Shown here in pieces: positions 7,874-58,635 of a DNA stretch of 64,000 nt. Each line of letters starts with the position of its first letter. Position 1 is the stretch's first letter. Source of the DNA: Diplonema japonicum (taxonomy: Eukaryota > Protista > Euglenozoa: Diplonemea); NCBI GenBank assembly GCA_964019335.1, contig OZ025705.1, positions 186,001 to 250,000 on the forward strand, written 5' to 3'. The position numbers and the translations under genes are program-made. A model generated the notes under the pieces. That model was not told where the DNA came from. It ran no database searches and was given only the letters and a program-made list of their open reading frames with translations.

Positions 7874-8584
7874 TTAGTTGCTGATCTTGACGCATTGTGG
7901 GGCGTAGTGGCACCAAGACAAGCACCTCGCCCAGTGCGAGTTCTGCTGGTAGCACGACAGACCAGCCTCGCAGCAGTTGGGGTTCGTGAGGCATCCTTGG
8001 TACGTACCAAGTCTGCGGGCGCAGGTGTCGGGAGAAGGCGGGCTGTTCCCGCTGCTAGAACTGCTGCTGCTAGAGCTGCTTGAACTGCTGCTGCTGCTGC
8101 CGGAGCTAGAACTGCTGCTGCTGCTGCTGCTGCTGCTGCTCGAGCTAGAACTGCTGCTGCTGCTGCCGGAGCTAGAACTGCTGCTGCTGCTGCTGCTGCT
8201 GCTCGAGCTAGAACTACCACCACCGCTGCTGCTGGAGCTGCTTGAACCACTGCTGCTGGAGCTACTGCTGCCTCCACTGCTGGAGCTGCTGCTGCTTGAA
8301 CTGGAGCTAGAACTAGAGCTGCTGCTGCCACTGCCTGGGGTAGGGGGGGTCGGAGGTGTTGGGGTCGGAACAGGAGCCGGCACCGTTCCCGCCATGTCAG
8401 GGCACCACGTCGACCAGTTCCACTCGCAAGTGCTCTTGCTCCCCCCACCTCCCCAGCAGGGGTCAGACCACCCCCCAGTCCTGAAGCATGGCTCCTTCTT
8501 ATCAATGCAAACCTGACACTGCGCCACAGTCTGTCCGGAGACACTAGCCGCGAGCAGCAGCAATGCAACAATCATTTTCATCAT
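7874..8584 (-). CDS. Secreted non-catalytic protein: N-terminal 6-Cys module, Pro/Thr and poly-Ser linker, C-terminal CBM1-like module
   Basis: Signal peptide; both terminal modules align by eye with those of the GH18 chitinase at 44798-46312. Confidence 0.85.
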   Translation of the reverse strand: MMKMIVALLLLAASVSGQTVAQCQVCIDKKEPCFRTGGWSDPCWGGGGSKSTCEWNWSTWCPDMAGTVPAPVPTPTPPTPPTPGSGSSSSSSSSSSSSSSSSSGGSSSSSSSGSSSSSSSGGGSSSSSSSSSSSSSSSSGSSSSSSSSSSSSSSSSSSSSSGSSSSSSSSSSSSSSSSGNSPPSPDTCARRLGTYQGCLTNPNCCEAGLSCYQQNSHWARCLSWCHYAPQCVKISN

Positions 8585-8966
8585 TCTGACCGAACCTAAG
8601 CTACAAGGGTGGGGTTAAAAGGGAATGGCAATTAAAACGAGATAATATAGGTTTCAGCAAGACATCACAAAAGGATGAACGCCTTTCTAAAAGGTGTTCC
8701 AAATAAAAGGAAGGTGGTATAAAAATACTTTTGCATCAAGGGTGGACCAATATCCACCGCTCGACATTCGTACCTTTGCACCCATAATGGACCAGCTAGA
8801 GATGAATAGGGTGGAAGATAGAGAAGGCCGTCTTTGGAGACCACATGAAAGGATGAAACAATCACGATCACGATTTGTGGTGGTGACGACGAACATTCGG
8901 ATATATTATTTATTATTATATTATTATTATCATTATTTTCCCCTTTAAACTTTTCTCTTCACACAT

Positions 8967-9326
8967 TCAGAGCTTTGTCGCGACCACAGCCTTGATCTTC
9001 CCATCCTCTATGGTGAAGGTTTCCTTCGCCTTCAGTGTGAGGAGCAGCATCTTCGCCTTCATCGTGCGGGTGAACTGCTTCCCGTCGGCGGACGCTTCGG
9101 GCTCCGAATGCCCGTAGAAGTCAGGCATGTTACTCAGAAGCTGCTTCCTCAAGGCCCCCTTCCCATTCGCCTCAAACTTCGGGTTCTTGAAATGCACGTC
9201 TTCCGTCATCAAGCTCAGCATCCCGTCAACGTCCTTCGACTTCGTGAACTTCGTGTACTGCGCGATAACCTCCATGTTTGCGATTGGTGTTTGTGGGGCT
9301 GCAGATGGGGGTGGGGGGGTTTGCAT
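8967..9326 (-). CDS. SnoaL/NTF2-like small protein
   Basis: DVDGMLSLMTEDVHFKNP...GKGALR...ETFTIEDGKI pattern; GC3 bias. Confidence 0.7.
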   Translation of the reverse strand: MQTPPPPSAAPQTPIANMEVIAQYTKFTKSKDVDGMLSLMTEDVHFKNPKFEANGKGALRKQLLSNMPDFYGHSEPEASADGKQFTRTMKAKMLLLTLKAKETFTIEDGKIKAVVATKL

Positions 9327-9633
9327 TTAAAGAATGCTTTGTTGCCCAAAAATAAAATAAATGAATAAAAGTAAAACCAGGGGGGGCAAGTACCTCACTC
9401 TTGCTTGTGACGAGGGGGACAGGGTGGGTGGGGGGTAGAAACTATATAAAAAGAGGGCTGCAAAAGCCGTAGCTGTTGCTATCCACTCTTTCTCTTGTTT
9501 CAAAAAAAATCAAAGATAAGTTTAAAGACGGGGAAGAGGAGGGACTCTTTCCTCCTCGAAAAAACAACTTTTTTATCTACAATTGCGGGGGGGGGGGGGG
9601 GGATAAAGAAAAAGAAAAGGGCACAGAGAGGGC

Positions 9634-9912
9634 TTATTTCCCAGGGAACTGAGCGTTCTTCTGCTGCTCAAGGAGTTCCTGGAACTTCTGCTTGAAGTGA
9701 GCGGAGTGGTCCCTCATCTTCTTGTTGAACTTGTCGGTGTGCTCCTTGATCATCTTCTCGAACTTGTCGTAGTGCTCCTTCATCTCAGGCGACAGGGTCG
9801 ACTCGTCGGGCTTGTCCGCGAAGAACTTCTTGTTCTGCTCCTCCATCTTCTTGCTGAACTCGGCATCGAGGCGGTCGAGCTTGTCGCTGAACTCCTGGTA
9901 CGTGGTGCACAT
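9634..9912 (-). CDS. KMP-11: Kinetoplastid membrane protein 11
   Basis: 92 aa MCTTYQEFSDKLDRLDAEF...KPDESTLSPEMKEHY...QQKNAQFPGK, closely matching trypanosomatid KMP-11. Confidence 0.97.
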   Translation of the reverse strand: MCTTYQEFSDKLDRLDAEFSKKMEEQNKKFFADKPDESTLSPEMKEHYDKFEKMIKEHTDKFNKKMRDHSAHFKQKFQELLEQQKNAQFPGK

Positions 9913-10864
9913 CTTTTTTTCTTTTTTTTTTTAAAAGGTTGTTTGTGTTGTGTGGCCCTTTTGTTGTCTTATTTTGGAAAGAAGAACGATTCATAGAAAA
10001 CACAAAATATAAACGGATTCATTTTTCTCTTTTCCTTCCCCCTTCCTGTCCCTGACGGCGCCAAAGGATATTCAACGGCCTGAGAGGTCGTCCGAAGGTT
10101 CAGAAGGGGGAAAGGAGAAAGGGAGAGAGGGAGGAAGGGAGGGAGGGAAAGTATAAAAAAGAAGACTTGAACTGTATATTCTTAAAAGGGTACCTTCGTC
10201 CAGTGCAATGCAGGTCTGCACGCAACCACAAAAGAAGGTCACCCTCTTATTTGTTCTTTTTTTAAAGCCGCCACTTCCACGTAAAGACGATTATCACCTT
10301 TCATAAAAGGAAGCAGGGAAGACAGACAGAGGCAACAACCCGTTGCCGTCTGTTGTCGTGTTAAGGAAGAAGTGAAACTTGAAACAAACAAAAGGGGAAA
10401 ACCATTTAAGGGTATCTGCGGTATGTCGCAGAAGGCTTAAATAATAAAGGTAAAAAAAAAAAAAAAGGGAAACAAACGAGAGAGAAGATATGTCAGAGGA
10501 GGGGGGTTGTGTTTGGTATTAAACAAAGAAAAGAAAAATACGATTGCCACAAAGGGGAAAAGGGAAGGGGGCACATCAAACAAGAATTGTTGTGAAAGAA
10601 GCAGGAAAAAAGAAAAAGAAAAAAGAAGAAAAAAAAGAGGAAAGCATCATATGTGGGTCCACAGGGAAGAGAACACACAGACAGGTAAGCAGAGAGGTGG
10701 CGTGACTCGGAGTCACGAAAGGCCCACGCCTTTGCTTGATTTCTTGTGGTTCTCTTCTTGGTTGTCATCCTTCCTTTTTTCCTTTGACTTCGGTTCATTT
10801 CAATGTTTGTTTTTTTCTTGTTTTTTTTTTTTCTTCTTTTTTTTTTGCCAGCTCCTCAGCACCA

Positions 10865-11818
10865 TCACCCGATGAGCTTGCACTGAGAGGCAACGTCGCA
10901 AGTCACCCTGCACTGGGCGTACCACTGGCTCTGCTGGTAGCAACGGCTCGGTGCCTCACAGCAAGAGGGTGACGACAGGCAGCTCCCCCACTCCGCGATC
11001 TTGAGACCAGAGCAGGTGCCTGCGGGAGGGGGCAGGTTCGTGGGGACAGTTGCGGTGGTGGTACTGCTGCCGCTGTTGCTGTTGCTGCTGCTGGTGGTGG
11101 TGGTACTGCCACTTTTGCTGCCGCTGCTGGTACTGCCGCCGTTGAGGCTGCTGCTGCTGCTGCTGGTACTGCCACTGCTGGTGGTGGTGGTGGTACTGCC
11201 ACCACTGTTGCTGCTGCTGCTGCCACCATTACCACCACCAAAGTTGTTGCTGGCACCGTTGAAGTCAAGGTCGATGGCGTTGTAGAAGCTGGCAGAGGTG
11301 TCACCGACATCCCAGACTGCAAGGACCACGTGGTAGCCGCTCCTGGTCGGGACCGTGCAGGAGTGGGTCACCCCAGAGAGAGGAGGCTGCTGCATCTCCC
11401 CGTCCACCGTGCAGAAGGGGGTCCCCTCCAAGGTCTCCCTCCCGAGAGGGTCCACCCCGTTCCACCCTTCCTTCGTGATGAAGTACCTCCAGTCCCGCGT
11501 CACATGGTTCGCCCTGAAGGCCCACGTGAAGTCCATCGCCCCGCTGCTCACAGAGGTCTTCGCCCACCTCGTCGTCGACTGCTCGTTCAGGGGTGTCCAG
11601 TTGTCCTTCCCAGCAGCAGCCACCGTCCCGTCCGCAGGGCCCGTCTCGGGGTACCGGTCCTTCCCCTCCACGCTCTGCGGCTCGTACTGCACCGCCCCGC
11701 AGTTCGTGTTCCTCTTCTGGTTGCACGACCAGCTCCTCGACGACGGGGTCACCACGTAGCCGTGCCCCTGCGCTGAGGCGAACAGGGCGGTCACGCAGAC
11801 AACAGAGCGCAGCATCAT
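10865..11818 (-). CDS. AA10 lytic polysaccharide monooxygenase (GbpA/CBP21-like) with Ser/Thr linker and CBM1-like module
   Basis: Signal peptide ending AQG, mature His1 (HGY), QYEPQSVEG, ANH, WRYFITK, VLAVWDVGDT.ASFYN; ATG follows a poly-A run. Confidence 0.95.
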   Translation of the reverse strand: MMLRSVVCVTALFASAQGHGYVVTPSSRSWSCNQKRNTNCGAVQYEPQSVEGKDRYPETGPADGTVAAAGKDNWTPLNEQSTTRWAKTSVSSGAMDFTWAFRANHVTRDWRYFITKEGWNGVDPLGRETLEGTPFCTVDGEMQQPPLSGVTHSCTVPTRSGYHVVLAVWDVGDTSASFYNAIDLDFNGASNNFGGGNGGSSSSNSGGSTTTTTSSGSTSSSSSSLNGGSTSSGSKSGSTTTTSSSNSNSGSSTTTATVPTNLPPPAGTCSGLKIAEWGSCLSSPSCCEAPSRCYQQSQWYAQCRVTCDVASQCKLIG

Positions 11819-11827
11819 TTCTTTGTT

Positions 11828-11885
<58 letters not shown>

Positions 11886-12688
11886 TGTTTTGGGGTTACA
11901 AAAACCTGGGTGCGTTGAGGTGGATAGGAAAGGAGAAGGAATAAAAGGAAATAAAGAAGCCCCTCCCTCAATTCTGTACCAAAGCAAAGGAGCAAAATAC
12001 AGAAAGGGGGTGAGATAGGGGGTGAGTGAAGAAAAAAAGAGAACAACATCTTCAACATCAGCAGCTTTTCTCTCTCGTTCTTTTATTTTATTTTTTTTCG
12101 GACAAGAACTGTAGCAAATGGCTAAGAGGAGAAGGGGAAGAAGAAAAAGTTGGTGGTTGATGCACACCAACCAAGTTAGGGGGAAGCCAAAAGCAAAAAC
12201 AAAAACAAAAGGAGTATGCTGCACACCTTGGAGGAAGAAATAAATATTTCAAAAAAAAGAAGAAGAAACCCCATTGATCTTCCAGGATAGCCTGTGGAAG
12301 TATGGAACCAAATGAAATGAAATGAAGACCCTCCAGCGCACACACATATCGGAAAAAAGGAAATCAAAAAAAAAAAAAGAGGAAAAAAAAAGAGACATTT
12401 AAGGGTACCTGCGGTATGTAGCACGACGCCTGAAGAAAGAAAAAAGAGTTGGCGGTTCGTTGTTTGTGCAAAGTCGGCGATATCCCGTAGAAAGTTAAAG
12501 CCGAACAGCCTCGACTCTTGGTGTTTTGAGATGTAGTCATCGGAAATTTATATATTTTTAATAAAAGAAAGAATAAAAGAAATTTCTTTTTTATTTACTG
12601 TAAACGAAAAAATCCGGAAGAGAAAAAATATCCGTTTTCCTTTTACAGTAATTTTTTTTTTTTTTTTTTTTTTATGTTGAGGAGGATG

Positions 12689-13459
12689 TCAACAGCAGCC
12701 CTGCTTCTTGCAAACCTTTCCCAACAGGATGTCAGAGCAGCCCTGCTGCTTGCAGACCTCTTCCAGATTGGAGGCGTTGCTCTCGCAGGAGAGACCCTTT
12801 GCATGCATCCTGCCCAGAACAGTCGACTCGGAGAGGTAGAAGTTCGCGAAGGGTGTCATGAAGTCCTCGGAGATGCTCTTCTCGCAGAGCCCCGTCTTCA
12901 TGAGGGCTGCCCGCCAGTTTTGCACCTTCGGGTAGCCGTGAGCAAAGTCGTAGCCGGTCTTCTCCTTGATGATCTGTGTTCGGTGCAGCAAAGGAAGCCA
13001 GGTCATGTCCACTGTGCTCACGGTGTCGCTGTTGAAGAACTCCGCCCCCCCAAGCACCTTCTCCACCTTCGCAAAGGCCGTCGCTATCTTCATCGTCCGC
13101 TCCCTCAACGTCTCCCCGTCACTGCTGGACTGCGCCCCGCACTGCGGCATGTAGTTCTTGCTCCCGAGGTACCCCCAAGCCCTGTTCTGCGCCCTCTGCA
13201 CGAGGCTCAGGTCCGGCTGCAGGGCAGGGTAAGCCTCCTCGATGTACTCCGCGATCGCCTCCGACTCGAACAGCACCTCCTCCTTCTCCGTCACAAGCAG
13301 CGGCACCTGCCCGTTGGGCGAGATGTCCAAAAACCACTGCGGCTTCTCCTTCAGGTTGATGTACTCCACAACGTAAGGGGTCTTCTTCGCCTCCAGCAGG
13401 GCCGTGATCCGCTGAACGAAGGGGCAGATCTTGAAGCTGATCACTTTTAGCACCGGCAT
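12689..13459 (-). CDS. Glutathione S-transferase, Cys-type (CPF motif, omega/DHAR-like), bacterial-like
   Basis: ICPFVQR, KPQWFLDISPNGQVPLL, LFESEAI.EYI; ends in CC. Confidence 0.92.
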   Translation of the reverse strand: MPVLKVISFKICPFVQRITALLEAKKTPYVVEYINLKEKPQWFLDISPNGQVPLLVTEKEEVLFESEAIAEYIEEAYPALQPDLSLVQRAQNRAWGYLGSKNYMPQCGAQSSSDGETLRERTMKIATAFAKVEKVLGGAEFFNSDTVSTVDMTWLPLLHRTQIIKEKTGYDFAHGYPKVQNWRAALMKTGLCEKSISEDFMTPFANFYLSESTVLGRMHAKGLSCESNASNLEEVCKQQGCSDILLGKVCKKQGCC

Positions 13460-14521
13460 TTTGCTTTTTTGTTTTTCTCTCTTTTTCTTTTTTTTTTTAT
13501 GGTGGTCTACTTTAAAGAACGTTTCCCATTAGGATATAGAAAATATTTTTTAAAAAAAGAACAAAAAGATTTTTCTCTTTTTCCTTCCCCCTTCCTGTCC
13601 CTGACGGCGCCAAAGGATATTCAACGGCCTGAGAGGTCGTCCGAAGGTTCAGAAGGGGGAAAGGAGAAAGGGAGAGAGGGAGGGAAAGTTTAAAAAAGTA
13701 GATGCAAACTCCGCGCGAGAGCCGCAGGCCAAAAAAAAAAAAAAAAAAAAAAAGAATAAGAAAAGTCGGAGTGTATATTTTCTTAGAAAAGGGGGCCTTC
13801 TTGTCGAGTGCATGCTGGTCACACCACAAAAAAAAAGGTCTGTTTTATTTATTTTTTTCATTTTTCAAAAATAGAAAAAAGCCGCCATTTCCACGTAAAA
13901 ACGATTTTCGCCTTTCATAAAAGGAAGCAGGGAAGACAGACAGAGGCAACAACCCGTTGCCGTCTGTTGTCGTGTTAAGGAAGAAAGAAATTGAAAACAA
14001 AAAAAGATAATAAAAGAAAAGAGAATTTAAAAAAAAAAAAAGCAATCGAGGGAGAAGAATACCAGAGGGGGGGGGGGGGGGGGTTGAGCAAAAGACGATT
14101 GTCACAAAAGGGAAAAGAGAAAGGGTCACACATCATGGGTGAGAGAGAAAAAAAAGAAGGGAAGCCAAAAAAATAAAATTCACTATGATAGGAACGAAGT
14201 GGTTAGCAACGGCCCGCCATAAAATAAAATAAAAGAAAGTGATGAAGGAAAGCAGCTGTCCCCTGGGAATACGGGTCCACAGGGAGGAGAACACAGACAT
14301 GTTGCGTAGCGAAAGACAAAGGCGTGACTCAGAGTCACGAAAGGTCACCCTCGCCTCACATTGCTGTGCCTCTTCAGATGGTGTGGTTCATTTGTTTTGT
14401 TTTATTTATTTTTTTGTTTTTCTTTTTAAAAAACTTTTGGCTTGTCATCCTTCATTTTTTTTTTGTTCTCATTCTTCAATCCTCGTTTCATTTTAACATT
14501 TTTAGTTTTTTTTTTTTTCCA

Positions 14522-14794
14522 TCACCCGATGAGCTTGCACTGAGAGGCGACGTCGCAAGTCACCCTGCACTGGGCGTACCACTGGCTCTGCTGGTAGCAA
14601 CGGCTCGGTGCCTCACAGCAAGAGGGTGACGACAGGCAGCTTCCCCACTCCGCGATCTTGGGACCAGAGCAGGTGCCCGAAGGAGAAGGCGGGTTCGTGG
14701 GGACAGGTGTGGGAACAGGGGTCGACACGGGAACAGTGGACCCACCTGCTGGGGTGGGTGTGGGTGTGGGGGTGGGTGCAGGTGTGGGAACAGG
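14522..14794 (-). pseudogene. 5'-deleted LPMO copy (Pro/Thr linker and CBM1-like module only)
   Basis: Matches 25721-25978; joined at 14794/14795 to the KMP-11 3' region; no in-frame ATG. Confidence 0.85.
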
Positions 14795-16122: not shown

Positions 16123-18819
16123 TCAGCGGGCTCCAGATGGGGGAGCGAAGCACGTGCATGTCTTGGGAACACCCGCCCCCCCGTTGTTGGGGCCACTCGG
16201 CTTCTTGCACATGGGTCTGTCGAGGCAGCCCTTCGAGGCGTCGTAGTGGCACTGCGAGGAAGCCACACAAGCCGCCTCGTCCTGTTTGAGCGAGCACTGC
16301 TCCCCCGCCGTGACCACGAAAACAACGAAGTGGAGGAGGTCCTTGGTGATGGGGACTTCCACGGGAGGTGCCCCTGCCGCCACCTCCAGCTTGAAGATCG
16401 CGGTCGGGAGGGGCTTCCTGTCGGAGGGCGCCCCAGGGAAGGTGGGAACGTACTTCGGACCACAGCTGCCTGCCTCGAAGCCTGCGTTCAGAAGCCCCTG
16501 CGGAAGGCCCCCGTTCCTAGTGCTGCTGCACGGGGGGCAGTTGTGGAGCACCACGTAGAAGGTGCAAGGGTCGCTCGCCTGGTTTGCAGGGCAGGTCACC
16601 TTCAAGGACATCCCCTTCCTTCCGTGTGCTCCCATGTGCGCCGTCGACCCCGCCAGCCACGAGGGTATCCCCGTCCACATCTGCCCGCTCACGTCGTCCT
16701 TCACAACAGAAGAAGACCCTTGTTGCCCCCCCGCAGCTGCAAGCGGCAGCGTCATCGCCATCACAACAGGGTCTTGATCCGCCGCCGGTGGCACCTTCAC
16801 CGTCACCAAAGCAGGGCCCCCAACAAGCTCCACCATAGGGGCGGCGGCGGAGGGACACTTTGCTGAGATGTCGTAGATCTCGAGGCTCTTCCCGAGGCCG
16901 CTGAGGAAGAGGTGGTCTCCTTCCACAAGGAGCGCGAGGACCATCGCAACCTCGTCCTTCGCGAGGAGAGTGAAGGTCCCCGTTGTCGCTGTCTCCTCCA
17001 GCACAAAGACGCCGTCGCCGCCCGTCCCTCGACACGCAAGGTACAACCTCGACCCGCGGAAGTGCATGTCTTGGCAGTTGGTCGCCTCGGTTGGGGCGTT
17101 CAACGGTTGCTGGGAAAGCGAGGCAGCGTCGGCCTTCCAAAGCTGGTCGGACACCTGGCTCACGTACAGAGAACCCTCATGGTACACAATCCGCCCAAAG
17201 CCGAAGTCGGGGATGGCCTTCATCGCGTGGAGCGACGGGTTCGCAGGATCCGACACGAGGAAAGTGCTGATCCTCCAGTGGGACGTGGAGGCCTTCGCTG
17301 CGTACACCTTCCCGTCGTGGTGGACCATGTCCATCGTCTCCAGGGAATCGGTTTCCGTTGTGAGTGCTGGTGTGTACATCCCCACCAGGTTCAAGGACCC
17401 CTTCGTGAGCACGTAGAAGGACTCCAGTCGAGTCATCTCGTTCATGTAAGCCACGTAGATGTGGTGGGCCGACTCCGCAATCCCACGGTCATTCCTACGG
17501 TTCGCGTCTTGTGGGGCGAAGGTGTTCAACACTGCAGGGACCGCAGGATTCTGCAGGGTGTACACAACCATTGCGTGGCGCCAAGCAACGTACAGCAGGT
17601 CCCCACTCACCAGTACAGCACGTGCATTACCGTGGGCCCCTTTCGGGATCTCCCCCAACTCCACCGGGTTCGCCTTGTCCGCCACATCCACAACCCTCAC
17701 CTTCCCCCCCAGCTCTGTCCCATACACATAATCTCCGAACGACGTCAAGTCCATCATCGCATCAAGAGCCCCCGGTCCTGTTTTCCCAACAAAAACAAGC
17801 TCCATGGGGGTACATCCTCCGGACGAGATCTCGTAGACCTGGAGGGTTTTCCCGAGGCCGCTGAGGAAGAGGTGGTCTCCTTCCACAAGGAGCGCGAGGA
17901 CCATCGCATCCTCGTCCTTCGCGAGGAGAGTGAAGGTCCCCGTTGTCGCTGTCTCCTCCAGCACAAAGACGCCGTCGCCGCCCGTCCCTCGACACGCAAG
18001 GTACAACCTCGACCCGCGGAAGTGCATGTCTTGGCAGTTGGTCGCCTCGGTTGGGGCGTTCAACGGTTGCTGGGAAAGCGAGGCAGCGTCGGCCTTCCAA
18101 AGCTGGTCGGACACCTGGCTCACGTACAGAGAACCCTCATGGTACACAATCCGCCCAAAGCCGAAGTCGGGGATGGCCTCCATCGCGTGGAGCGACGGGT
18201 TCGCAGGATCCGACACGAGGAAAGTGCTGATCCTCCAGTGGGACACGGAGGCCCTCGTTGCGTACACCTTCCCGTCGTGGTGGACCATGTCCATCGTCTC
18301 CAGGGAATCGGTTTCCGTTGTGAGTGTCGGTGTGTACATCCCCACCAGGTTCAAGGATCCCTTCGTGAGCACGTAGAAGGACTCCAGGCGAGTCATCTTG
18401 TTCATGTAAGCAACGTAGATGTGGTGGGCCGACTCCGCAATCCCACGGTCATTCCCACGGTCCGCGTCTTGTGGGGCGAAGGTGTTCAACACTGCAGGGA
18501 CCGCAGGATTCTGCAGGGTGTACACAACCATTGCGTGGCGCCAAGCAACGTACAGCAGGTCCCCACTCACCAGCACACCACGCGCCTTCCCGCGGGCTCC
18601 TCTCGGGATCTCCCCCAACTCCACCGGGTTCGCCTTGTCCGCCACATCCACAATCTTCAAATTCCCCCCCAGCTCCGCCCCGTACACATAATCTCCGAAC
18701 GACGCCATGTCCACCATCGCATCAAGAGCCTGCCCCGGTCCTGTCCCTGCCCCTAGCTTCTTGAGACCCTGGCTTCCCACGCAGAGAGCTGCGAACAGCA
18801 ACATCTTCAACATCAGCAT
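16123..18819 (-). CDS. Secreted LVIVD-repeat (double beta-propeller-like) protein with a Cys-rich C-terminal domain
   Basis: Signal peptide; GDYVYGAELGGNLKIVDVADKANPVELG and VSGDLLYVA repeats; two 960-bp units; C-terminal CPPCS..NGGLP..GSCGP domain. Confidence 0.85.
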   Translation of the reverse strand: MLMLKMLLFAALCVGSQGLKKLGAGTGPGQALDAMVDMASFGDYVYGAELGGNLKIVDVADKANPVELGEIPRGARGKARGVLVSGDLLYVAWRHAMVVYTLQNPAVPAVLNTFAPQDADRGNDRGIAESAHHIYVAYMNKMTRLESFYVLTKGSLNLVGMYTPTLTTETDSLETMDMVHHDGKVYATRASVSHWRISTFLVSDPANPSLHAMEAIPDFGFGRIVYHEGSLYVSQVSDQLWKADAASLSQQPLNAPTEATNCQDMHFRGSRLYLACRGTGGDGVFVLEETATTGTFTLLAKDEDAMVLALLVEGDHLFLSGLGKTLQVYEISSGGCTPMELVFVGKTGPGALDAMMDLTSFGDYVYGTELGGKVRVVDVADKANPVELGEIPKGAHGNARAVLVSGDLLYVAWRHAMVVYTLQNPAVPAVLNTFAPQDANRRNDRGIAESAHHIYVAYMNEMTRLESFYVLTKGSLNLVGMYTPALTTETDSLETMDMVHHDGKVYAAKASTSHWRISTFLVSDPANPSLHAMKAIPDFGFGRIVYHEGSLYVSQVSDQLWKADAASLSQQPLNAPTEATNCQDMHFRGSRLYLACRGTGGDGVFVLEETATTGTFTLLAKDEVAMVLALLVEGDHLFLSGLGKSLEIYDISAKCPSAAAPMVELVGGPALVTVKVPPAADQDPVVMAMTLPLAAAGGQQGSSSVVKDDVSGQMWTGIPSWLAGSTAHMGAHGRKGMSLKVTCPANQASDPCTFYVVLHNCPPCSSTRNGGLPQGLLNAGFEAGSCGPKYVPTFPGAPSDRKPLPTAIFKLEVAAGAPPVEVPITKDLLHFVVFVVTAGEQCSLKQDEAACVASSQCHYDASKGCLDRPMCKKPSGPNNGGAGVPKTCTCFAPPSGAR
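16870..18740 (-). repeat. 960-bp (320-aa) tandem duplication inside the LVIVD gene
   Basis: Shadow ORFs offset by 960 (16970/17930, 17459/18419); long identical stretches. Confidence 0.9.
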
Positions 18820-19269: not shown

Positions 19270-20711
19270 CTACTTCCTGAGGGTGAGCTTGGTGCCCTTG
19301 GGGGCGGACGCGATGCTGCTGCAGATGTTCTCGAAGTAGGTGCCCTGGGTGTCCTGCTCGCACTGCCCGGTGGGCTGGGTGGAGGAGATGGCGAAGCCGC
19401 TGCAGTCGGCGGAGACGAGGTACTCCTTCATGACGAGGCCGGAGGCGTCGCAGGCGGAGATCATGGCAGAGCCACCGCCGGTGACGGGGAGGCACTGACC
19501 GATGGGGAAGGAGTGCGACTGGCAGCCCGAGGTGCACCCCGAGTCGGTGCAGGTCTTCTGGGTGAAGGTCCCCGAGGGGGAGGGGGGAGTCGGGCCAGGC
19601 GGCGAGGGCGGGGTCGGGCCCGATCCGGACACCTTCGAGGTGCAGGGGGAGTTGTTCAAGAGGCACTGGTTGGACCCCCTGGCGAGCCTGATGTACCCGT
19701 TCTCACCCCACGACGCCCCCCAAGAGTTCTTCACGATCCAGTAGTCCGTCGCGAAACCCACAATCAGCACACCGTGGTCCAGCTGCCTGCTGATGCAGTT
19801 CGACATCACACCCCCGGTGTATGTCTGCCACGAGGTCGCGTCCACGGCGATGGAGAGGGGGCCGTTCGTCGACACCCAGGTCGCCATGTCGTCCTCGTTG
19901 TGCGCGATGTCCTGGTGTCCGGAGATGGTCGCCCCCACAGCCTTCGACCCCACGTCCTGGCACGACCCGCTGTTCCCGCCACCCGAGGTGTACGGGTACG
20001 AGGCCTCCGTTACGATCTGCCCGTTGTGCGCAGACAGCAGCCACTCGAAGGCGTTGTCCATGAGACCGCCGTCGCAGCCGTCGTCGTTCTTGTCGCACGA
20101 GACAAGCTCCTGCTCCGAGAGGGAGGTCAGGGTGTTGCCGGCAAGGAACCACTGACCCTCGATGCCACCAGTGGTGGAGAATGCCCAGCAGCTGTTGTTG
20201 TTTAATATTATTATTTTTTTTCTTTTATTTTTTTTCTTTTCTTTTTTTTTTTTTTTTTGTAAATGTCTCTTTTTTTTTTTTTTTTTTTTCTTTTCCTTAT
20301 TTCTTTTGTTTCCCTTCCATACCTCCCGCACTGCTCCTGGTTCTTCACGTGGGTCACAGCCCCCTTGGTCCTCCAGTCCACAGGGGTCGCGGTCAAACCC
20401 TCGAACATCCTGGGAGGGCTCTTCTTCGAGGGAACCTGCAGGTTGTGGTGCACCTTGAACTCCTCTGCCGACAGGTCGCTGAAGGCGTTCATCCCGAAGG
20501 TCGCCTTGGGGTTGGACTCCTCGAACATCGCTGCCTTCAACATGTTCTTCTTGAAGATGGCCCTCCTGTGCGCCTCGTCGGAGCCGGTGTACTTCTTGTT
20601 GTAGGTCTCCTTGAAGTTCTTCCAAAGGAGCGCTTCGTTGGCCTCAATGTACGAGGCAGGCAGACCTGCCGTCGCCGAGGCAAGGCAGAGGAGCGCAAGG
20701 CTGGTCTTCAT
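19270..20711 (-). CDS. Cathepsin L-like C1A cysteine peptidase with cruzipain-type C-terminal extension (436 aa; intron 20192-20322)
   Basis: Signal peptide and I29 propeptide; splicing of GTATGG...CAG restores QCGSCWAF; LDHGV and KNSWG present; Pro hinge and FTQKTCTDSGC extension. Confidence 0.95.
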
Positions 20712-20815: not shown

Positions 20816-21243
20816 AAGAATACTAATAAGTTCGACACTCAAGGCTGGCGCTTTCGCGCTCACCCGCTTGTCTTGCAGTTTTCAAAAAAGAAACGAAAAG
20901 AAATAAAAGAGAGAAAGACAGGGACTCCAAAGGTCTAAACAACATCATTGCTAACCCACTTTTCCCCCTTTCACTTTTGCGTGATTCTTAACTCGTGTAG
21001 AATGGAACTGTTGTATATGTGGAATGCTTTGCACTGTCATCACACGAAGTGACTGAATAAAGAGGGCTGCAAAAGCCGTAGCTGTTGCTATCCACTCTTT
21101 CTCTTGTTTCAAAAAAAATCAAAGATAAGTTTAAAGACGGGGAAGAGGAGGGACTCTTTCCTCCTCGAAAAAACAACTTTTTTATCTACAATTGCGGGGG
21201 GGGGGGGGGGGGATAAAGAAAAAGAAAAGGGCACAGAGAGGGC

Positions 21244-21522
21244 TTATTTCCCAGGGAACTGAGCGTTCTTCTGCTGCTCAAGGAGTTCCTGGAACTTCTG
21301 CTTGAAGTGAGCGGAGTGGTCCCTCATCTTCTTGTTGAACTTGTCGGTGTGCTCCTTGATCATCTTCTCGAACTTGTCGTAGTGCTCCTTCATCTCAGGC
21401 GACAGGGTCGACTCGTCGGGCTTGTCCGCGAAGAACTTCTTGTTCTGCTCCTCCATCTTCTTGCTGAACTCGGCATCGAGGCGGTCGAGCTTGTCGCTGA
21501 ACTCCTGGTACGTGGTGCACAT
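21244..21522 (-). CDS. KMP-11: Kinetoplastid membrane protein 11
   Basis: Protein identical to 9634-9912. Confidence 0.97.
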   Translation of the reverse strand: MCTTYQEFSDKLDRLDAEFSKKMEEQNKKFFADKPDESTLSPEMKEHYDKFEKMIKEHTDKFNKKMRDHSAHFKQKFQELLEQQKNAQFPGK

Positions 21523-22466
21523 CTTTTTTTCTTTTTTTTTTTAAAAGGTTGTTTGTGTTGTGTGGCCCTTTTGTTGTCTTATTTTGGAAAGAAGAACGAT
21601 TCATAGAAAACACAAAATATAAACGGATTCATTTTTCTCTTTTCCTTCCCCCTTCCTGTCCCTGACGGCGCCAAAGGATATTCAACGGCCTGAGAGGTCG
21701 TCCGAAGGTTCAGAAGGGGGAAAGGAGAAAGGGAGAGAGGGAGGAAGGGAGGGAGGGAAAGTATAAAAAAGAAGACTTGAACTGTATATTCTTAAAAGGG
21801 TACCTTCGTCCAGTGCAATGCAGGTCTGCACGCAACCACAAAAGAAGGTCACCCTCTTATTTGTTCTTTTTTTAAAGCCGCCACTTCCACGTAAAGACGA
21901 TTATCACCTTTCATAAAAGGAAGCAGGGAAGACAGACAGAGGCAACAACCCGTTGCCGTCTGTTGTCGTGTTAAGGAAGAAGTGAAACTTGAAACAAACA
22001 AAAGGGGAAAACCATTTAAGGGTATCTGCGGTATGTCGCAGAAGGCTTAAATAATAAAGGTAAAAAAAAAAAAAAGGGAAACAAACAACGAGAGAGAAGA
22101 TATGTCAGAGGAGGGGGGTTGTGTTTGGTATTAAACAAAGAAAAGAAAAATACGATTGCCACAAAGGGGAAAAGGGAAAGGGGGCACATCAAACAAGAAT
22201 CGTTGTGAAAGAAGAAGGAAAAAAAAAGAAAGAGGAAAGCATCATATGTGGGTCCACAGCGAAGAGAACACACAGACAGGTAAGCAGAGAGGTGGCGTGA
22301 CTCGGAGTCACGAAAGGCCCACGCCTTTGCTTGATTTCTTGTGGTTCTCTTCTTGGTTACCATCCTTCCTTTTTTTCCCCTTCGATTTCGGTTCATTTTA
22401 ATGTTTGTTCTTTTTCTTGTTTGTTTGTTTCTTTTTCTTTTTTTTTTTGCCAGCTCCTCAGCACCA

Positions 22467-23426
22467 TCACCCGATGAGCTTGCACTGAGAGGCAACGTCG
22501 CACTTCACCCTGCACTGGGCGTACCACTGGCTCTGCTGGTAGCAACGGCTCGGTGCCTCACAGCAAGAGGGTGACGACAGGCAGCTCCCCCACTCCGCGA
22601 TCTTGGGACCAGAGCAGGTGCCCGCGGGAGGGGGCAGGTTCGTGGGGACGGTTGCGGTGGTGGTACTGCCACCACTGCTGCTGCTGCTGCTGCTGCCACT
22701 GCTGGTGGTGGTGGTACTGCCACCAGTGTTGCTGCTGCCGCTGCTGGTACTGCCACTGCTGGTGGTGGTGGTGGAACTGCCACCACTGTTGCTGCTGCTG
22801 CCGGTGGTGGTACTGCTGCTGCTGCTGCTGCCACCATTACCACCACCAAAGTTGTTGCTGGCACCGTTGAAGTCAAGGTCGATGGCGTTGTAGAAGCTGG
22901 CAGAGGTGTCACCGACATCCCAGACTGCAAGGACCACGTGGTAGCCGCTCCTGGTCGGGACCGTGCAGGAGTGGGTCACCCCAGAGAGAGGAGGCTGCTG
23001 CATCTCCCCGTCCACCGTGCAGAAGGGGGTCCCCTCCAAGGTCTCCCTCCCGAGAGGGTCCACCCCGTTCCACCCTTCCTTCGTGATGAAGTACCTCCAG
23101 TCCCGCGTCACATGGTTCGCCCTGAAGGCCCACGTGAAGTCCATCGCCCCGCTGCTCACAGAGGTCTTCGCCCACCTCGTCGTCGACTGCTCGTTCAGGG
23201 GTGTCCAGTTGTCCTTCCCAGCAGCAGCCACCGTCCCGTCCGCAGGGCCCGTCTCGGGGTACCGGTCCTCCCCCTCCACGCTCTGCGGCTCGTACTGCAC
23301 CGCCCCGCAGTTCGTGTTCCTCTTCTGGTTGCACGACCAGCTCCTCGACGACGGGGTCACCACGTAGCCGTGCCCCTGCGCTGAGGCGAACAGGGCGGTC
23401 ACGCAGACAACAGAGCGCAGCATCAT
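22467..23426 (-). CDS. AA10 LPMO with Ser/Thr linker and CBM1-like module (copy 2)
   Basis: Same motifs as copy 1; His brace intact. Confidence 0.95.
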   Translation of the reverse strand: MMLRSVVCVTALFASAQGHGYVVTPSSRSWSCNQKRNTNCGAVQYEPQSVEGEDRYPETGPADGTVAAAGKDNWTPLNEQSTTRWAKTSVSSGAMDFTWAFRANHVTRDWRYFITKEGWNGVDPLGRETLEGTPFCTVDGEMQQPPLSGVTHSCTVPTRSGYHVVLAVWDVGDTSASFYNAIDLDFNGASNNFGGGNGGSSSSSSTTTGSSSNSGGSSTTTTSSGSTSSGSSNTGGSTTTTSSGSSSSSSSGGSTTTATVPTNLPPPAGTCSGPKIAEWGSCLSSPSCCEAPSRCYQQSQWYAQCRVKCDVASQCKLIG

Positions 23427-24011: not shown

Positions 24012-24048
<37 letters not shown>

Positions 24049-24058
24049 GAGGAGGATG

Positions 24059-26641: not shown

Positions 26642-26647
26642 TTCTTT

Positions 26648-26679
<32 letters not shown>

Positions 26680-26770
26680 CGGTGGTGGAAACTGCAATGC
26701 TTGAAAACTGCCAGAAGAGGGGGGGAAAAACAGCCCCATAAACCACTAAATGTTTCCGTAGTACTTAAGT

Positions 26771-44797: not shown

Positions 44798-46312
44798 CTA
44801 GTTGCTACTGATCTTCTCACAACCTACTTGGTTGTTGCAGGAAACTAGACACCTGGCCCAAAACTGGCTTTCCTTGTAGCACGACAGACCAGCCATACAG
44901 CAGTTCGGTTCCGAGAGGCATCCTTCCCACTCATTAAACCTGGTAGCACAGCTAGTAGAGGTGACTGGAACGGCAGGCGGGGGTGTCAGAGGAGTGGGCA
45001 CAGGGGTTGGGACAGGAGTGGGCACAGGGGTTGGGACAGGAGTGGGCACAGGGGTCACGGGGATCACCTCCATAGTGGTGTCCTCGGGAGCAGCATTGCT
45101 ACCATTGCTGTTGCTGTTCTTGTTGGCGCTGCACCCCCTGGCAGGGCTGACGGAAGCACTGACCGCCTGGGACCAGGCCCCGTTGATGTCGTCAAAAGCG
45201 ACCCAGAAGAAGGCCCCCCCGTTGCAGGGGTACTCCTTGTTCAGGTCATTCATCACGCTGACAGCCTGCTGCGCGTTGCTGTTGGAGTTGGTGCCCCCGC
45301 AGTCGCTGATGCAGAAGCCGAAGACGATCCTCGTCGGGTCGTTCCCGAGCACATCCGTCACAAGGGTCCTAAGGTGCGTCAGGGCGGGGTTGGTTCCCCC
45401 GTAGATACCCTCCGTGTTGGGGCTCGTGATCCCGTTGTAGTACTGCGGCATGAGGAAGTCCACGGAGCTTGCTGTCTCCTTGATGACGTTGTAGTAGCCT
45501 CTCCCCGGCACGAGGTCGACGTCGATCGGGGTGTGCGTCACGATGTTGGCCCCAACGGGGAGCCTCTGTTTGAGCCCGACAGTCACTTCCCTCAAAAAGG
45601 TCTGCGCCTGTGCCCCCTTCGCGAAGGGGGACCCGTTGTGCCCGTCCTCGTAGTAGTACTCGTAGTCGATGTCCACCCCGTCGAAGCCCTGGTCCCGCGA
45701 GATGTCCACCAGCTGCTGGATCACGAAGTCCTCCTTCCCGTAGCAGTACTCCCAGCAGTCGTTCTTCCCGTCCCAGTGGCCTCCCATCCCGGCCCCGCCG
45801 AAGGACAGGATCACCTTCTTCCCAGCCGCACGCCACTTCTGCACCAGGGCGGGCTGCGGGGCGTTCTCGCACACTGGCACAGGCGAGATCACGCACTGCT
45901 CGTTGCAGATGTTCTTTTCCTCGTTAAATGTGTAGGTCACCGCGAAGGACACGAGGACGTGTGTGTAGGCGTTCATCTGTGCGTCGGTGGGGCACGTCTG
46001 CCAGTTCCCGACGAAGGCCACCATCCTGTTGTCGTCGGAGGCCTGCGCAGAGGGGGCGGGCGGCGTGGCAGGCGGGGCCGGCTGCGAGGGTGTGGTCGGT
46101 GTTGGGGGTGCCATGCCCCCCATTGTGGGGCACCATGTCGCACTGTTTGCTTCGCACGTGCTGGCGCTGCCACCACCTGCATAGCAGGGCTCCGCCCACT
46201 CTGGCTTGAAGCACGGTGCACCCATGTCGATGCAGCGCTGGCACTGTGCAGCCGTTTGCCCAGAGGCACTCGCCGCGAGCAGCAGCACCAACCCGAACGC
46301 CTTCAGTGTCAT
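44798..46312 (-). CDS. Secreted GH18 chitinase with N-terminal 6-Cys module and C-terminal CBM1-like module
   Basis: KVILSFGG, catalytic FDGVDIDYE, MPQYYN; signal peptide; PVPT linker. Confidence 0.93.
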   Translation of the reverse strand: MTLKAFGLVLLLAASASGQTAAQCQRCIDMGAPCFKPEWAEPCYAGGGSASTCEANSATWCPTMGGMAPPTPTTPSQPAPPATPPAPSAQASDDNRMVAFVGNWQTCPTDAQMNAYTHVLVSFAVTYTFNEEKNICNEQCVISPVPVCENAPQPALVQKWRAAGKKVILSFGGAGMGGHWDGKNDCWEYCYGKEDFVIQQLVDISRDQGFDGVDIDYEYYYEDGHNGSPFAKGAQAQTFLREVTVGLKQRLPVGANIVTHTPIDVDLVPGRGYYNVIKETASSVDFLMPQYYNGITSPNTEGIYGGTNPALTHLRTLVTDVLGNDPTRIVFGFCISDCGGTNSNSNAQQAVSVMNDLNKEYPCNGGAFFWVAFDDINGAWSQAVSASVSPARGCSANKNSNSNGSNAAPEDTTMEVIPVTPVPTPVPTPVPTPVPTPVPTPLTPPPAVPVTSTSCATRFNEWEGCLSEPNCCMAGLSCYKESQFWARCLVSCNNQVGCEKISSN

Positions 46313-47300: not shown

Positions 47301-47338
<38 letters not shown>

Positions 47339-47589: not shown

Positions 47590-47623
<34 letters not shown>

Positions 47624-47631
47624 CACTCCCG

Positions 47632-55889: not shown

Positions 55890-55941
<52 letters not shown>

Positions 55942-56025
55942 CGTAGTTCTTCTTCCATACCTCCCTCTCGACACAAGTTTCAACAATTGCTGTCCGCACC
56001 TGTTATCTCCTCCTAAGAAATCCAT
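52337..56025 (-). CDS. WASHC5: Strumpellin / WASH complex subunit 5 (1159 aa; introns 55888-55960, 55671-55718, 55536-55577, 52412-52457)
   Basis: MDFL...N.CGQ.LL.LVSRG.SIIAEL.RLS, GKQLMAEALYLYG, MREIVDKHFPDNW; all four introns keep frame. Confidence 0.95.
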
Positions 56026-57024
56026 GCGATTCTCTTTTTTTTTTTTTCTTCTTTTCCCCTAACTTCCCTCCCACCACCTCCGCCTGTTGTAAAGTCTGGA
56101 TCTATGGAAGAAGAAAAACAAGGCATAATAATCAAAGGGTCACGAGCAAAGAAAGGGGTAGGGTGAGAGTGTCAACGCCAAATGCGGCTTAGACACATTT
56201 CTTTTTTTTTTTTTTTGTGTGAGATTAGGAAAGAAAAGAAGACATTCAGTCTTCAGAGTTTTTTTTTTTTTTTTTTTCTTTTGCGCAAAAAGGGAGGGAA
56301 GGAACGGTCATCGCAAATAAATAAATATAAAAATTTAAAAAAATAAAGAAGAACTGGCCGTTTGTACGCGCCGGGTAGAAGTTTATAAAACCCTTAAACA
56401 CGTGGCCAACGTTCTCCCTTTGTTTAGACAAGTCAAAGACTTGTTTTCGCAAAAAAAAAAAAAAAAAAAAAAAAAACAACAGCAGCAAGCAAAGATTCTT
56501 TTTTTTTTTTTTAGATTATTGATGCTTCTGCAGCTGTAAATAAAAAAGAAATATAAAAAAAAAGAAAACCTTAGCCAATACATGCAATGCCTCTCACCTA
56601 ACAAGGATAAGCTACCGCCTCTAGGGGAAAACAAACTACAAGAATGGCTACAAAAAACAACAAAGAAAAAAACTGTAAAAAAAAGAGAAATACAGAAAGA
56701 AGAAACATGGATACTCACAATTAGCGTGCACCACGAAGGAAAAAAGTGCATTCAGGGTTTCAATATGATCCCCTGTCCATTCTTTTTTTATTCTTTTCTT
56801 CTGCATTTTCCCTCTTTTTTTTTTTTTTTTTTTTTTTCCAGCCCTTTACAGAAAAGGAAAGAAAGAAAAAAATAGAAATAACATACACCCATTGGACAGA
56901 TAGTATGGGGCTGTTGTCAATAACACTTAACCAAAAATATAAAAAAAAAGTAAAAGGAGAGGAGAAAAAAAATTTTTTTTTCTTTTTTTTCCATACAAAA
57001 AGCAAGTACTTGAATGCGCCATGC

Positions 57025-58635
57025 CTAATTGCACGCCCCTGAGGGGTTGTTGGAGCAGGTGCAGTCCTGCTCAGGGCAAACAGCAGGGTCCACAGAATCA
57101 GCGAAGTTCCAACCGACGCAGTGGTAGCAGGTGATGGCATTGAAGGGGTCGTACACCCTCTTCACACCGAGGAGCCTGTTGTAGTTCTCCATGCTGCCCC
57201 AGTAGCGCTCCTTCCAGTCGTTCGACGGGAAGTTGTGCTGCGGCTCGTTCCAGTACACCCAACCGGTCCCCAAGGGGCGGAGCACGGTCTCCCCCCACGA
57301 GTCCATGTCCGCCACAATCTGCTGCTTCTGCTCTACGGTCGCCTCCTCCGCCCACGAGGACACGCACGTCACCTGGATGTCCGCGTTACGCATGGCAGGC
57401 GAGATAGACGTCAGGTCCCCAGTCGGGTCCATCGTCTTCATGGCACCCCCGAGCACCGACGACTGCGTGCAGAACTTCGTGAAGGGCATGGTCTCCGCTT
57501 TGGTCACCCATGCCGTCGTGGCGTTGATGAGGGCCAGGGCGTCCTCCCCCGACACGGAGTTCGACACCGAGTACTGGTTCCCACCGGGAGGGGGCGACAG
57601 GGAGTCCAAAAGGCTGTAGTAGGTGTTTGTGTTGTTCTGCTGGCAGTTCCCCGGGAGCAGCCCCGGCACGCACCCCGGCAGGCCGGACACCTTCGAGATG
57701 TGCTCGTTGCAGTTGTCGCCGTAGCACCAGGTCACCATGAACACGGGGTTCCCAGGGATCGCTCCAAGCGTGAGGTAGTAGCCACCCGCCTCCTTCGGTG
57801 CCACCGAGATGAAGTTGTGGTAAGCTTGCATAATGGCGGTCTGGTGCTCCTCGCCCTGCGGGAAGAACACCCCGAGGAAGCTCGTCACCTTCTGCGGTGT
57901 GGGGTTCAGTCTGAAGGTCATGCTCACGGTGATGCCGTAGGCGGAGCCCCCGCTTCCACGAAGGGACCTGAAGAGCTCGGGGTGATGGTACTCGTTGGCC
58001 GTCACCACGATCCCTGACGCCAGCACCACCTTCATCTCCACCAGGAGGTCCGCACCGAGCCCGTGCATCCTGCTGAGGTAGCCGTGGCCGCCACCTGTTG
58101 CCCACCCGTACGGCCCCACAGTGCTGTCCCCGCCCGTCGCGATGGCGTACGCCTCGTTTGTCTCAGCCTTCACGTACTCGGAGATCTCGCCGAAGGTCTG
58201 CCCGGGGCCCACCCTGATGTGCTTCTCGTCCCCGAAGTCGAAGATCACCTTCTCGTTGAACTCCGTCATCACGATGTGCACAGCGTTGTCAGCGATGTTC
58301 CTGACGTCCATGTGGTGCCCAGTGCTCAGCACAGAGACGCGCATCCCGTGCCACCTTGCGAAGCGCAGCGACTTCTGGATGTCCCTCACGCAGGTAGGGA
58401 ACACCATCATCGCGGGCTGCGGGGTGTTTGTTCTCGTGCTGTACGTGTACGGGGCGTACTCCGAGTCCGTCTTCAGGTGCACCTCCCCGTGGATGTAGTG
58501 CTTGAACCATTTGAACTGAGTGGCCGTTGGCCACCTCCAGTCCCCGGGAAGGCTGTACCTGTAGCCGTCGGAGCCCCAGGCCTCAGTCGGCACGGCGAGG
58601 GCCATCAACAGGGCAGCGAATAGCAAGCTTCTCAT
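57025..58635 (-). CDS. Secreted FAD-linked oxidase, berberine-bridge-enzyme/AA7-like
   Basis: Signal peptide; STGH (FAD-binding His motif), GGGHGYLSRMHGLGAD, LRGSGG..YG, BBE tail YWG..NY.RL..VKR.YDP.N. Confidence 0.9.
   Translation of the reverse strand: MRSLLFAALLMALAVPTEAWGSDGYRYSLPGDWRWPTATQFKWFKHYIHGEVHLKTDSEYAPYTYSTRTNTPQPAMMVFPTCVRDIQKSLRFARWHGMRVSVLSTGHHMDVRNIADNAVHIVMTEFNEKVIFDFGDEKHIRVGPGQTFGEISEYVKAETNEAYAIATGGDSTVGPYGWATGGGHGYLSRMHGLGADLLVEMKVVLASGIVVTANEYHHPELFRSLRGSGGSAYGITVSMTFRLNPTPQKVTSFLGVFFPQGEEHQTAIMQAYHNFISVAPKEAGGYYLTLGAIPGNPVFMVTWCYGDNCNEHISKVSGLPGCVPGLLPGNCQQNNTNTYYSLLDSLSPPPGGNQYSVSNSVSGEDALALINATTAWVTKAETMPFTKFCTQSSVLGGAMKTMDPTGDLTSISPAMRNADIQVTCVSSWAEEATVEQKQQIVADMDSWGETVLRPLGTGWVYWNEPQHNFPSNDWKERYWGSMENYNRLLGVKRVYDPFNAITCYHCVGWNFADSVDPAVCPEQDCTCSNNPSGACN

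Follow-up and report, generated by a model that had tools for sequence, protein, structure and literature searches.

The window analysed here is a 64,000-nucleotide stretch of Diplonema japonicum DNA (assembly GCA_964019335.1, contig OZ025705.1, positions 186,001 to 250,000 of the forward strand). It carries three genes for AA10 lytic polysaccharide monooxygenases (LPMO1 to LPMO3), a gene for a GH18 chitinase, a gene for a 236-aa protein with two small modules, which we call the binder, and a gene for a BBE-like FAD oxidase. We conclude that the window probably samples a lineage-specific secreted chitinolytic repertoire of D. japonicum. An earlier note, made from the letters of the window alone, had proposed a secreted chitin-degradation system in a euglenozoan, with crustaceans, diatoms or fungi as possible targets. 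The organism is indeed a euglenozoan, and over 280 aa there is 100% identity between EP01064_P030242, a EukProt protein of D. japonicum, and one of the genomic LPMO copies of the same contig. The proposed system is partly supported, by the domain identities, by AA10-GH18 fusions in relatives and by sampled module partners that are almost only AA10 and GH18, but not as regards a dedicated locus or the participation of the oxidase.

All three LPMOs match Pfam LPMO_10 (PF03067) over the full model (positions 1-183) with 148-150 bits against a cut-off of 23 (E about 1e-43), and with the histidine brace kept, their assignment to AA10 in the earlier note stands. LPMO1 consists of a signal peptide, the AA10 domain, a Ser/Thr/Gly linker and an 8-Cys CBM1-like C-terminal module (C-module, 10868-11023), LPMO2 of a signal peptide, the AA10 domain, a Ser/Thr linker and a C-module (22470-22625), and LPMO3 of the AA10 domain, a Pro/Thr linker and a C-module (25724-25879), its first 193 aa being 100% identical to LPMO2. 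The likely start of all three is the methionine of MMLRS..., and the listed open reading frames (ORFs) at 10865-12058 and 25721-26746 extend upstream of it. Long A/G-rich runs, read in frame as poly-Lys, lie upstream of the likely starts of many minus-strand genes (e.g. 11819-12058 and 26642-26746), so that mechanically delimited ORFs overshoot the real starts. The predicted cleavage after ...ALFASAQG, with Ala and Gly at -3 and -1, would expose His1 at the head of HGYV, which aligns with residue 1 of mature CBP21.

Compared with solved structures, LPMO2 matches GbpA of Vibrio (E 3e-58) and CBP21 of Serratia (E 6e-53), both of them C1-oxidising, chitin-active AA10 LPMOs, whereas cellulose-active AA10 structures match it far worse (E 1e-5 to 1e-9). 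The residues equivalent to H28, Y54, E55, Q57, S58, E60, A112, H114, W178, D182 and F187 of CBP21 are kept in LPMO2. With the residue numbers and roles of CBP21 (brace His, axial Phe, Ala112, Glu60), the copper-site residues are all conserved and the chitin-face residues mostly so, including the YEPQS surface stretch, and the catalytic domain is predicted to be of the chitin-active GbpA/CBP21 type. The diplonemid proteins resemble GbpA (Vibrio cholerae) and CBP21 (Serratia marcescens) in the catalytic domain, with His1 after the signal peptide and the brace completed by the second His, and they also have the axial Phe, the Ala and Glu equivalent to Ala112 and Glu60, and YEPQS. They differ in their eukaryotic host and in their accessory parts, since Ser/Thr/Pro linkers with one or two modules derived from CBM1 stand in place of GbpA domains 2-4 and CBM5/12/73. 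They differ also in number, with about 49 AA10 copies in the D. japonicum genome where one or a few are usual in bacteria.

Outside the diplonemids, the nearest homologues come from marine gammaproteobacteria (Halioglobus, Halieaceae, Hahella, Zooshikella and Vibrio), whose GbpA-type LPMOs are 50-60% identical over the catalytic domain. These bacterial proteins carry PF18416, PF21868 and PF02839, all of which are missing from the diplonemid LPMOs. In a tree of 151 AA10 domains, rooted at the midpoint only, the bacterial sequences stand next to a group (SH-aLRT 87) that unites the AA10s of D. japonicum, D. ambulator and Rhynchopus euleeides with most module-bearing ENA sequences. One bacterial transfer would be the most economical, though tentative, reading of this midpoint-rooted tree.

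The three LPMO genes, the chitinase gene and the binder gene, all five of them intact, end in the same 8-Cys module, as the earlier note had seen. In the alignment of the five C-modules the eight Cys are invariant, together with L, P, A, Y, A and I, and a profile of the five scores each of them in the genome at E 1e-27 to 1e-28. The modules of the LPMO type and of the GH18 type are only about 40-50% identical, and any shuffling must therefore be old and not recent. The earlier idea of module shuffling holds in so far as the modules are real and modular, but not as a recent event.

None of the three window C-modules that were scanned reached the cut-off of 20.6 for Pfam CBM_1 (PF00734); the module of LPMO2 scored 13.6 bits (E 0.063) and those of the binder and the chitinase gave no match. 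Two paralogous LPMOs pass this cut-off at the protein level (21.8 and 21.2 bits), and a genome-wide Pfam scan found one classical CBM_1 only. When 1.84 billion representatives were searched with a profile built from 26 genomic modules, only 235 proteins were recovered at E <= 0.001, with CBM_1 in 14 of the 80 top matches. The best match, P0256 (E 8e-63), has 12 repeats and Pfam CBM_1 with 183 bits in 6 stretches, and its repeat at 317-359 found by the module profile covers the best CBM_1 stretch (325-352). P0257 represents an intermediate form, in which a classical WGQCGG core is combined with an extra C-terminal disulfide loop as in the diplonemid module. The AlphaFold2 model of the module (pLDDT 84) is a small beta structure. 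Foldseek matched it to 1cbh, 7yhf and 5x39 at TM 0.70-0.73 and an rmsd of ~2 A, all with E > 0.2 and with knottin toxins scoring alike, and to the CBM1 of CDH at 28-33% identity, again with E > 0.2; VIA-align gave Z <= 4.2. We conclude that the C-module is a divergent, disulfide-reinforced CBM1 homologue outside the current family model.

With fungal CBM1 (Trichoderma reesei Cel7A, 1cbh) the module shares the core W-G-x-C ... C-x-x-G-x-x-C ... W-Y-x-Q-C and a terminal position behind a glycosylation-type linker. Its model, a small knottin-like beta structure, superposes on the fungal one at TM 0.72-0.73, with the weak E-values given above. Where the fungal module has 4 Cys, the diplonemid one has 8: one more Cys at the N-terminus, a CC pair and, at the C-terminus, a C-x5-C loop. 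Its GGxxYxG loop is shorter, and its partners are AA10 and GH18 instead of cellulases.

The chitinase is composed of a signal peptide, a 6-Cys N-terminal module (N-module, 46115-46261), a Pro-rich linker, the GH18 domain, a Pro/Thr linker and a C-module (44801-44956). Pfam Glyco_hydro_18 scores 37.4 bits against a cut-off of 29.6 over profile positions 1-138 only, and the remaining barrel aligns to residues 179-408 of the GH18 chitinase 6k7z, the best solved match (E 3e-11). The catalytic DxxDxDxE motif is present as DGVDIDYE at residue 211 and is identical in 11 paralogues. These results agree with the earlier identification as a GH18 chitinase, and by its motif the enzyme looks catalytically competent. 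Proteins with 50-67% identity to its catalytic domain exist in diatoms and in other diplonemids.

The N-modules of the chitinase and the binder are 63% identical over 50 aa with 6 conserved Cys, which confirms the common N-terminal module that had been noticed before. No Pfam family matches the N-module. Its AlphaFold2 models were unstable (best pLDDT 82, the other four 46-63), and fold searches yielded no match from Foldseek, Z <= 2.6 from VIA-align and no return from ESM Atlas. The module is also found on GH18s of D. ambulator and D. papillatum. Its 24 matches in the D. japonicum genome are nearly all situated at the N-terminus of a GH18, in the order N-module, GH18, C-module, or on two binder genes, and we regard it as a putative diplonemid-specific chitinase module.

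The binder starts with a predicted signal peptide (MMKMIVALLLLAASVSG, cleaved before Q), followed by the N-module (8387-8533), a poly-Ser run of ~110 aa and an 8-Cys CBM1-like C-module (7877-8032); its translation contains no catalytic domain and the Pfam scan gave no family. Its C-module is 73% identical to modules of GH18 paralogues, compared with 39% to the LPMO subtype. As both of its modules belong to the GH18-associated subtype, the binder looks like a GH18 gene minus the catalytic domain, and it may have been derived from such a gene by loss of that domain. A second copy, 96.6% identical, is found on contig C58 at ~281.8 kb. The paralogues of the window chitinase and binder (88% and 96.6% identical) adjoin LPMOs ~88 kb downstream, which indicates that the triad was duplicated as a segment.

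The searched assembly comprises 62.5 Mb and may be incomplete. It holds 52 LPMO_10 matches, of which 49 are full length, 58 GH18 matches at ~38 loci and at least 109 C-module matches, and the window is one ordinary, loose sample of this large genome-wide family. We surveyed 58 module-bearing ORFs sampled from the C-module matches and found 28 LPMOs, 17 GH18s or fragments, 3 metallophosphoesterases, 3 unknown proteins, 1 Gly-rich domain and 6 single ORFs, the second binder copy included. The metallophosphoesterases, which are calcineurin-like and carry a C-terminal CBM1-like module (C75 at ~304 kb, C108 at ~149 and ~165 kb), were an unexpected partner. Giant open frames of ~2,400-2,570 aa with two GH18 domains each are present on contigs C33, C5, C11, C61, C20, C98, C43 and C111, and at least one of them (C111) ends in a C-module. 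On C58, a 6,732-bp unit with two LPMO genes is repeated three times in tandem at 357-375 kb.

LPMO and GH18 genes are often located within ~25 kb of contig ends, frequently as an LPMO-GH18 pair 7-8 kb apart. Examples are C104 (1.6-9.5 kb and 291.6-299.7 kb, i.e. both ends), C39 (571-578 kb), C5 (887-895 kb), C11 (810-818 kb) and C61 (496-504 kb). About 16 of the 38 GH18 loci lie at contig ends, against about 11% expected. LPMO and GH18 genes together look like a subtelomeric gene family.

AA10 and GH18 are also linked within single polypeptides. Five ENA proteins (P0122-P0126, on contigs of 0.46-0.84 Mb) have the order GbpA-type AA10, module, GH18, module, and in the tree the AA10 domains of these proteins fall together with the Rhynchopus euleeides ones. 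Such fusions in relatives back a joint chitin function. In D. japonicum itself, LPMO-GH18 pairs 2-8 kb apart exist outside the window. Many of the diatom relatives of the GH18 are AA10-GH18 fusions as well (the Seminavis robusta 'Chitin binding domain' protein, Pseudo-nitzschia, Ditylum); they belong to the same GH18 subfamily (50-58% identity) and likewise couple AA10 with GH18 and chitin-binding modules. They differ from the diplonemid proteins in that the modules are CBM14 or CBM18 and not CBM1-like, and in D. japonicum AA10 and GH18 are separate genes. The diatom AA10 is too divergent for a phmmer match to the diplonemid LPMO, even at E 10, and we rejected a common origin of the diatom fusions and the diplonemid AA10. 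Another eukaryotic AA10, that of Ustilago maydis, is reported to be active on fungal cell-wall chitin (PMC10617569); it offers a precedent for action on chitin, but from another lineage and another biological context.

Regarding expression, the genome paper of D. papillatum (PMC10161547) lists in its supplementary file 4 ten D. japonicum AA10 transcripts at 151-1574 transcripts per million (TPM), which are not discussed further; by our own addition they sum to ~7,470 TPM, or about 0.75% of mRNA. According to the same paper GH18, GH19 and GH20 of D. japonicum are expressed, and LPMOs are stated to be lacking in D. papillatum. Three possible RNA runs hold 21-29% of the words of window positions 7400-12400.

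The history that we propose is as follows. An AA10 of the chitin-active GbpA/CBP21 type would most probably have been acquired once from marine gammaproteobacteria and would have lost its bacterial accessory domains, while Ser/Thr/Pro linkers of the O-glycosylation type would have joined it to an 8-Cys module that is eukaryotic and derived from CBM1. The chitinase, a diatom-type GH18, carries a sister subtype of this C-module together with the putative diplonemid-specific 6-Cys N-module, and both families would then have been amplified by tandem and segmental duplication. Outside the cell, the CBM1-like module may dock each of the presumably secreted enzymes on crystalline chitin, where the copper LPMO, supplied with a reductant and H2O2 or O2, would make C1-oxidised chain breaks. 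GH18 would act in synergy by hydrolysing the loosened chains, GH19 and GH20 could complete the breakdown, and the products would feed the cell. The binder is probably a bivalent chitin binder or cross-linker. The wider proposal, that diplonemids of the Diplonema/Rhynchopus group are marine oxidative chitin degraders by virtue of a captured bacterial AA10 welded to a CBM1-derived module, with ~50 such genes in D. japonicum, is one that we offer tentatively as quite possibly correct.

Several points weigh against the chitinolytic reading and the history just given. Sequence does not reveal the substrate of an AA10 with certainty, and cellulose is the classical ligand of CBM1 modules. The AA10 tree has an arbitrary root and moderate support for a single eukaryotic clade, and a second small module-bearing AA10 group is placed among bacterial sequences. 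A functional link of AA10 and GH18 is favoured by 10 of the 49 LPMOs, which have a GH18 gene less than 10 kb away in the assembly, against about 0.6 expected, but this statistic overstates the number of independent events, as many of the pairs are copies of one duplicated block near contig ends. An exact-sequence look-up of the six window proteins in the protein collection found none of them, and transcription is known for close paralogues only. Finally, the lack of a match to Chitin_synth_1 or Chitin_synth_2 in the assembly, with a Chitin_synth_2 control positive in two named genomes, favours the chitinolytic reading but is weak evidence because of the possible incompleteness of the assembly.

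One alternative is that the proteins serve adhesion or colonisation more than feeding. LPMO-CBM proteins and the binder would mainly attach the flagellate to chitinous or GlcNAc-rich surfaces (copepods, moults, marine snow or host epithelia, for example), with Vibrio GbpA as the model, and cleavage would be secondary. GbpA, the closest characterised relative, is a colonisation factor, a bivalent binder without catalytic domain exists in two copies, and AA10 mRNA is very high and constitutive in culture, in a medium not known to contain chitin. We nevertheless consider this alternative unlikely. None of the copies examined departs from the His brace or the second-sphere residues, the modules are found also on GH18s with an intact catalytic motif, the adhesion domains of GbpA (PF18416 and PF21868) are missing from the diplonemid proteins, and the downstream GH19 and GH20 are expressed (PMC10161547).

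The nature of the oxidase bears on a different question, namely whether the LPMOs have a dedicated AA7-like supplier of H2O2. The earlier note had counted the oxidase as an AA7-like member of the chitin set. With the AA7 enzymes GOOX and ChitO it shares the architecture of FAD_binding_4 (75.4 bits) and BBE (29.8 bits) and a secretion signal, seen as a hydrophobic N-terminus or signal peptide. Its gene is on the same strand as the GH18 gene and 10.6 kb away, and BBE-like oxidases often make H2O2. Furthermore, a gene-only copy, 99.5% identical, lies at 377.3 kb on C58, next to the tandem units described above and 2.4 kb from the last LPMO of the array (C58 374-378 kb). However, the best PDB matches are fungal VAO-type enzymes, the 'alcohol oxidase' 6f74 (6e-24) and MtVAO615 (6f72), and the PDB search revealed no specific affinity to GOOX, ChitO or XylO over other BBE-like enzymes: ChitO (1.5e-19) scores level with EncM and BBE-like proteins of plants, and GOOX follows at 1e-11. 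The His motif LSTGHH is present, but GGDSTVG has an Asp where the consensus would place the Cys of the bicovalent FAD motif (8-alpha-His / 6-S-Cys), so that the Cys is seemingly replaced.

The oxidase also lacks a CBM module and a consistent linkage to LPMOs. The genome contains 12 matches to it, including the window gene, and nine of its ten other paralogue matches either lie on other contigs or are separated from every LPMO and GH18 gene by more than 70 kb. Rotifers and a chytrid have homologues with about 40% identity, none of them named after a carbohydrate, and supplementary file 4 of PMC10161547 lists the CAZymes AA1, AA2, AA3 and AA10 for D. japonicum, but not AA7. The AA7-like membership in the chitin set is accordingly not supported. 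By its similarities the protein is best described as a generic BBE-like flavoprotein, for which a role as LPMO partner is possible but unsupported; it would be at most a facultative source of H2O2, and we hold it doubtful that it is a dedicated one.

It seems improbable to us that the enzymes in fact act on cellulose or on a different crystalline beta-glycan. The module is derived from CBM1, the CBM1 proteins found by the module profile in other organisms mostly partner the cellulose enzymes GH5, GH45, GH7 and AA9, some AA10s oxidise cellulose, and the Pfam description of LPMO_10 includes it. On the other hand, none of the 58 sampled carriers is a cellulase and 45 of them are AA10 or GH18, the AA10 clusters with the chitin-specific GbpA and CBP21 and away from the poorly matching cellulose-active structures, and GH18 is a family of chitinases and endo-GlcNAc-ases. 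Least probable is that the cell remodels chitin of its own, in a cyst wall or in extruded fibres, a role that has been proposed for the chitinases of diatoms. This would fit a GH18 subfamily shared with diatoms, a group that includes chitin producers and also fuses GH18 to AA10, but is at odds with the missing chitin synthase match and with ~50 LPMO genes and a share of mRNA that seem excessive for housekeeping remodelling.

Within the window, every feature of the chitin set and also the oxidase gene are on the minus strand, which carries nearly all of the long ORFs (Table 1). The earlier note had spoken of a directional cluster that includes the oxidase. The predicted secreted BBE-type oxidase does lie on the same strand, but the same run also encodes DnaJ, a mitochondrial carrier, a K+ channel, a tetraspanin, GT90, CFAP300, a Na+/H+ exchanger, a WD40-TBC protein and strumpellin. 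Because these unrelated housekeeping genes intervene, we rejected the run as a functional cluster and do not consider the window a dedicated chitin locus. The shortest LPMO-GH18 distance in the window, between LPMO3 and the chitinase gene, is 19.5 kb with 9-10 unrelated ORFs, and two ORFs lie between the chitinase and the oxidase genes. A scan of the window against Rfam found no RNA family.

Table 1. Features of the chitin set, the oxidase gene and the segmental duplication in the window.
Feature	Position	Strand	Basis
Binder gene (236 aa)	7874-8584	-	Translation; no Pfam family
LPMO1	10865-11818	-	Pfam LPMO_10 E 4e-43; module alignment
LPMO relic	14525-14680 (approx.)	-	Translation; module profile
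LPMO2 (319 aa)	22467-23426	-	Pfam LPMO_10 E 1e-43; structure matches
LPMO3 (306 aa)	25721-26641	-	Pfam LPMO_10 E about 1e-43; translation
GH18 chitinase (504 aa)	44798-46312	-	Pfam Glyco_hydro_18; 6k7z match; DGVDIDYE
BBE-like FAD oxidase (536 aa)	57025-58635	-	Pfam FAD_binding_4 + BBE
Segmental duplication, copy A	9450-14794	not assigned	Self-BLAST, 87-97% identity; LPMO1 + GST + LPMO relic
Segmental duplication, copy B	21059-25978		Self-BLAST; continues into LPMO3

The three LPMO genes of the window stem from a segmental duplication of ~5.3 kb, of which the parts at 14079-14794 and 25308-25978 are 87% identical. In the self-BLAST of the window, identity between the LPMO catalytic parts reaches 99.7%, which suggests homogenisation. 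Between the LPMO genes, the duplication includes copies of a GST gene (GST_N + GST_C) at 12689-13459 and 24059-24829 on the minus strand. The LPMO relic, which brings the C-modules of the window to six, retains a Pro/Thr linker and an intact C-module, which scores E 5e-28 with the module profile within a 153-aa open frame; it is 5'-truncated, with neither a catalytic domain nor a Met start, and represents the truncated counterpart of LPMO3 in copy A.

An intact beta-tubulin gene (446 aa, 58941-60281, minus strand) is situated just past the oxidase gene, and a 578-bp fragment, 99.3% identical to the 5' part of this gene, is found at 6193-6770 (minus strand) just upstream of the binder gene. The region between binder and oxidase is thus bracketed by tubulin sequence, a trace of rearrangement. 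Two genes lie between the two LPMO duplication units, both on the minus strand. One (16123-18819) encodes an 898-aa protein whose N-terminus resembles a signal peptide and which has an LVIVD / beta-propeller match and an internal repeat of 960 bp; the next (19270-20625) encodes a papain-family protease (Peptidase_C1 + DUF3586). A 759-aa Cys-rich protein with a signal-peptide-like start, 783-bp internal repeats that are 98.5% identical and no Pfam family is encoded at 1187-3466 (minus strand).

A chitinolytic toolkit of AA10 and GH18 is already known, and the AA10 transcripts of D. japonicum had been tabulated in PMC10161547. What is new relative to the published record is the combination of a bacterial AA10 core with a eukaryotic CBM1-derived module, the new N-module and the extreme amplification. 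If chitin oxidation is confirmed as the function, so massive and highly expressed an LPMO family, bacterial in derivation and equipped with a eukaryotic binding module, would suggest that chitin is a main substrate for feeding or attachment, and the family would clearly exemplify a horizontal transfer after which the domains were re-tooled. It would also add a CBM1 subfamily directed at chitin, a previously undescribed module at the N-terminus of chitinases and, for enzyme work, compact LPMOs expressible in eukaryotes. For these abundant marine flagellates, it would mean an unrecognised eukaryotic route of chitin turnover in the ocean, from moults, marine snow and diatom fibres.

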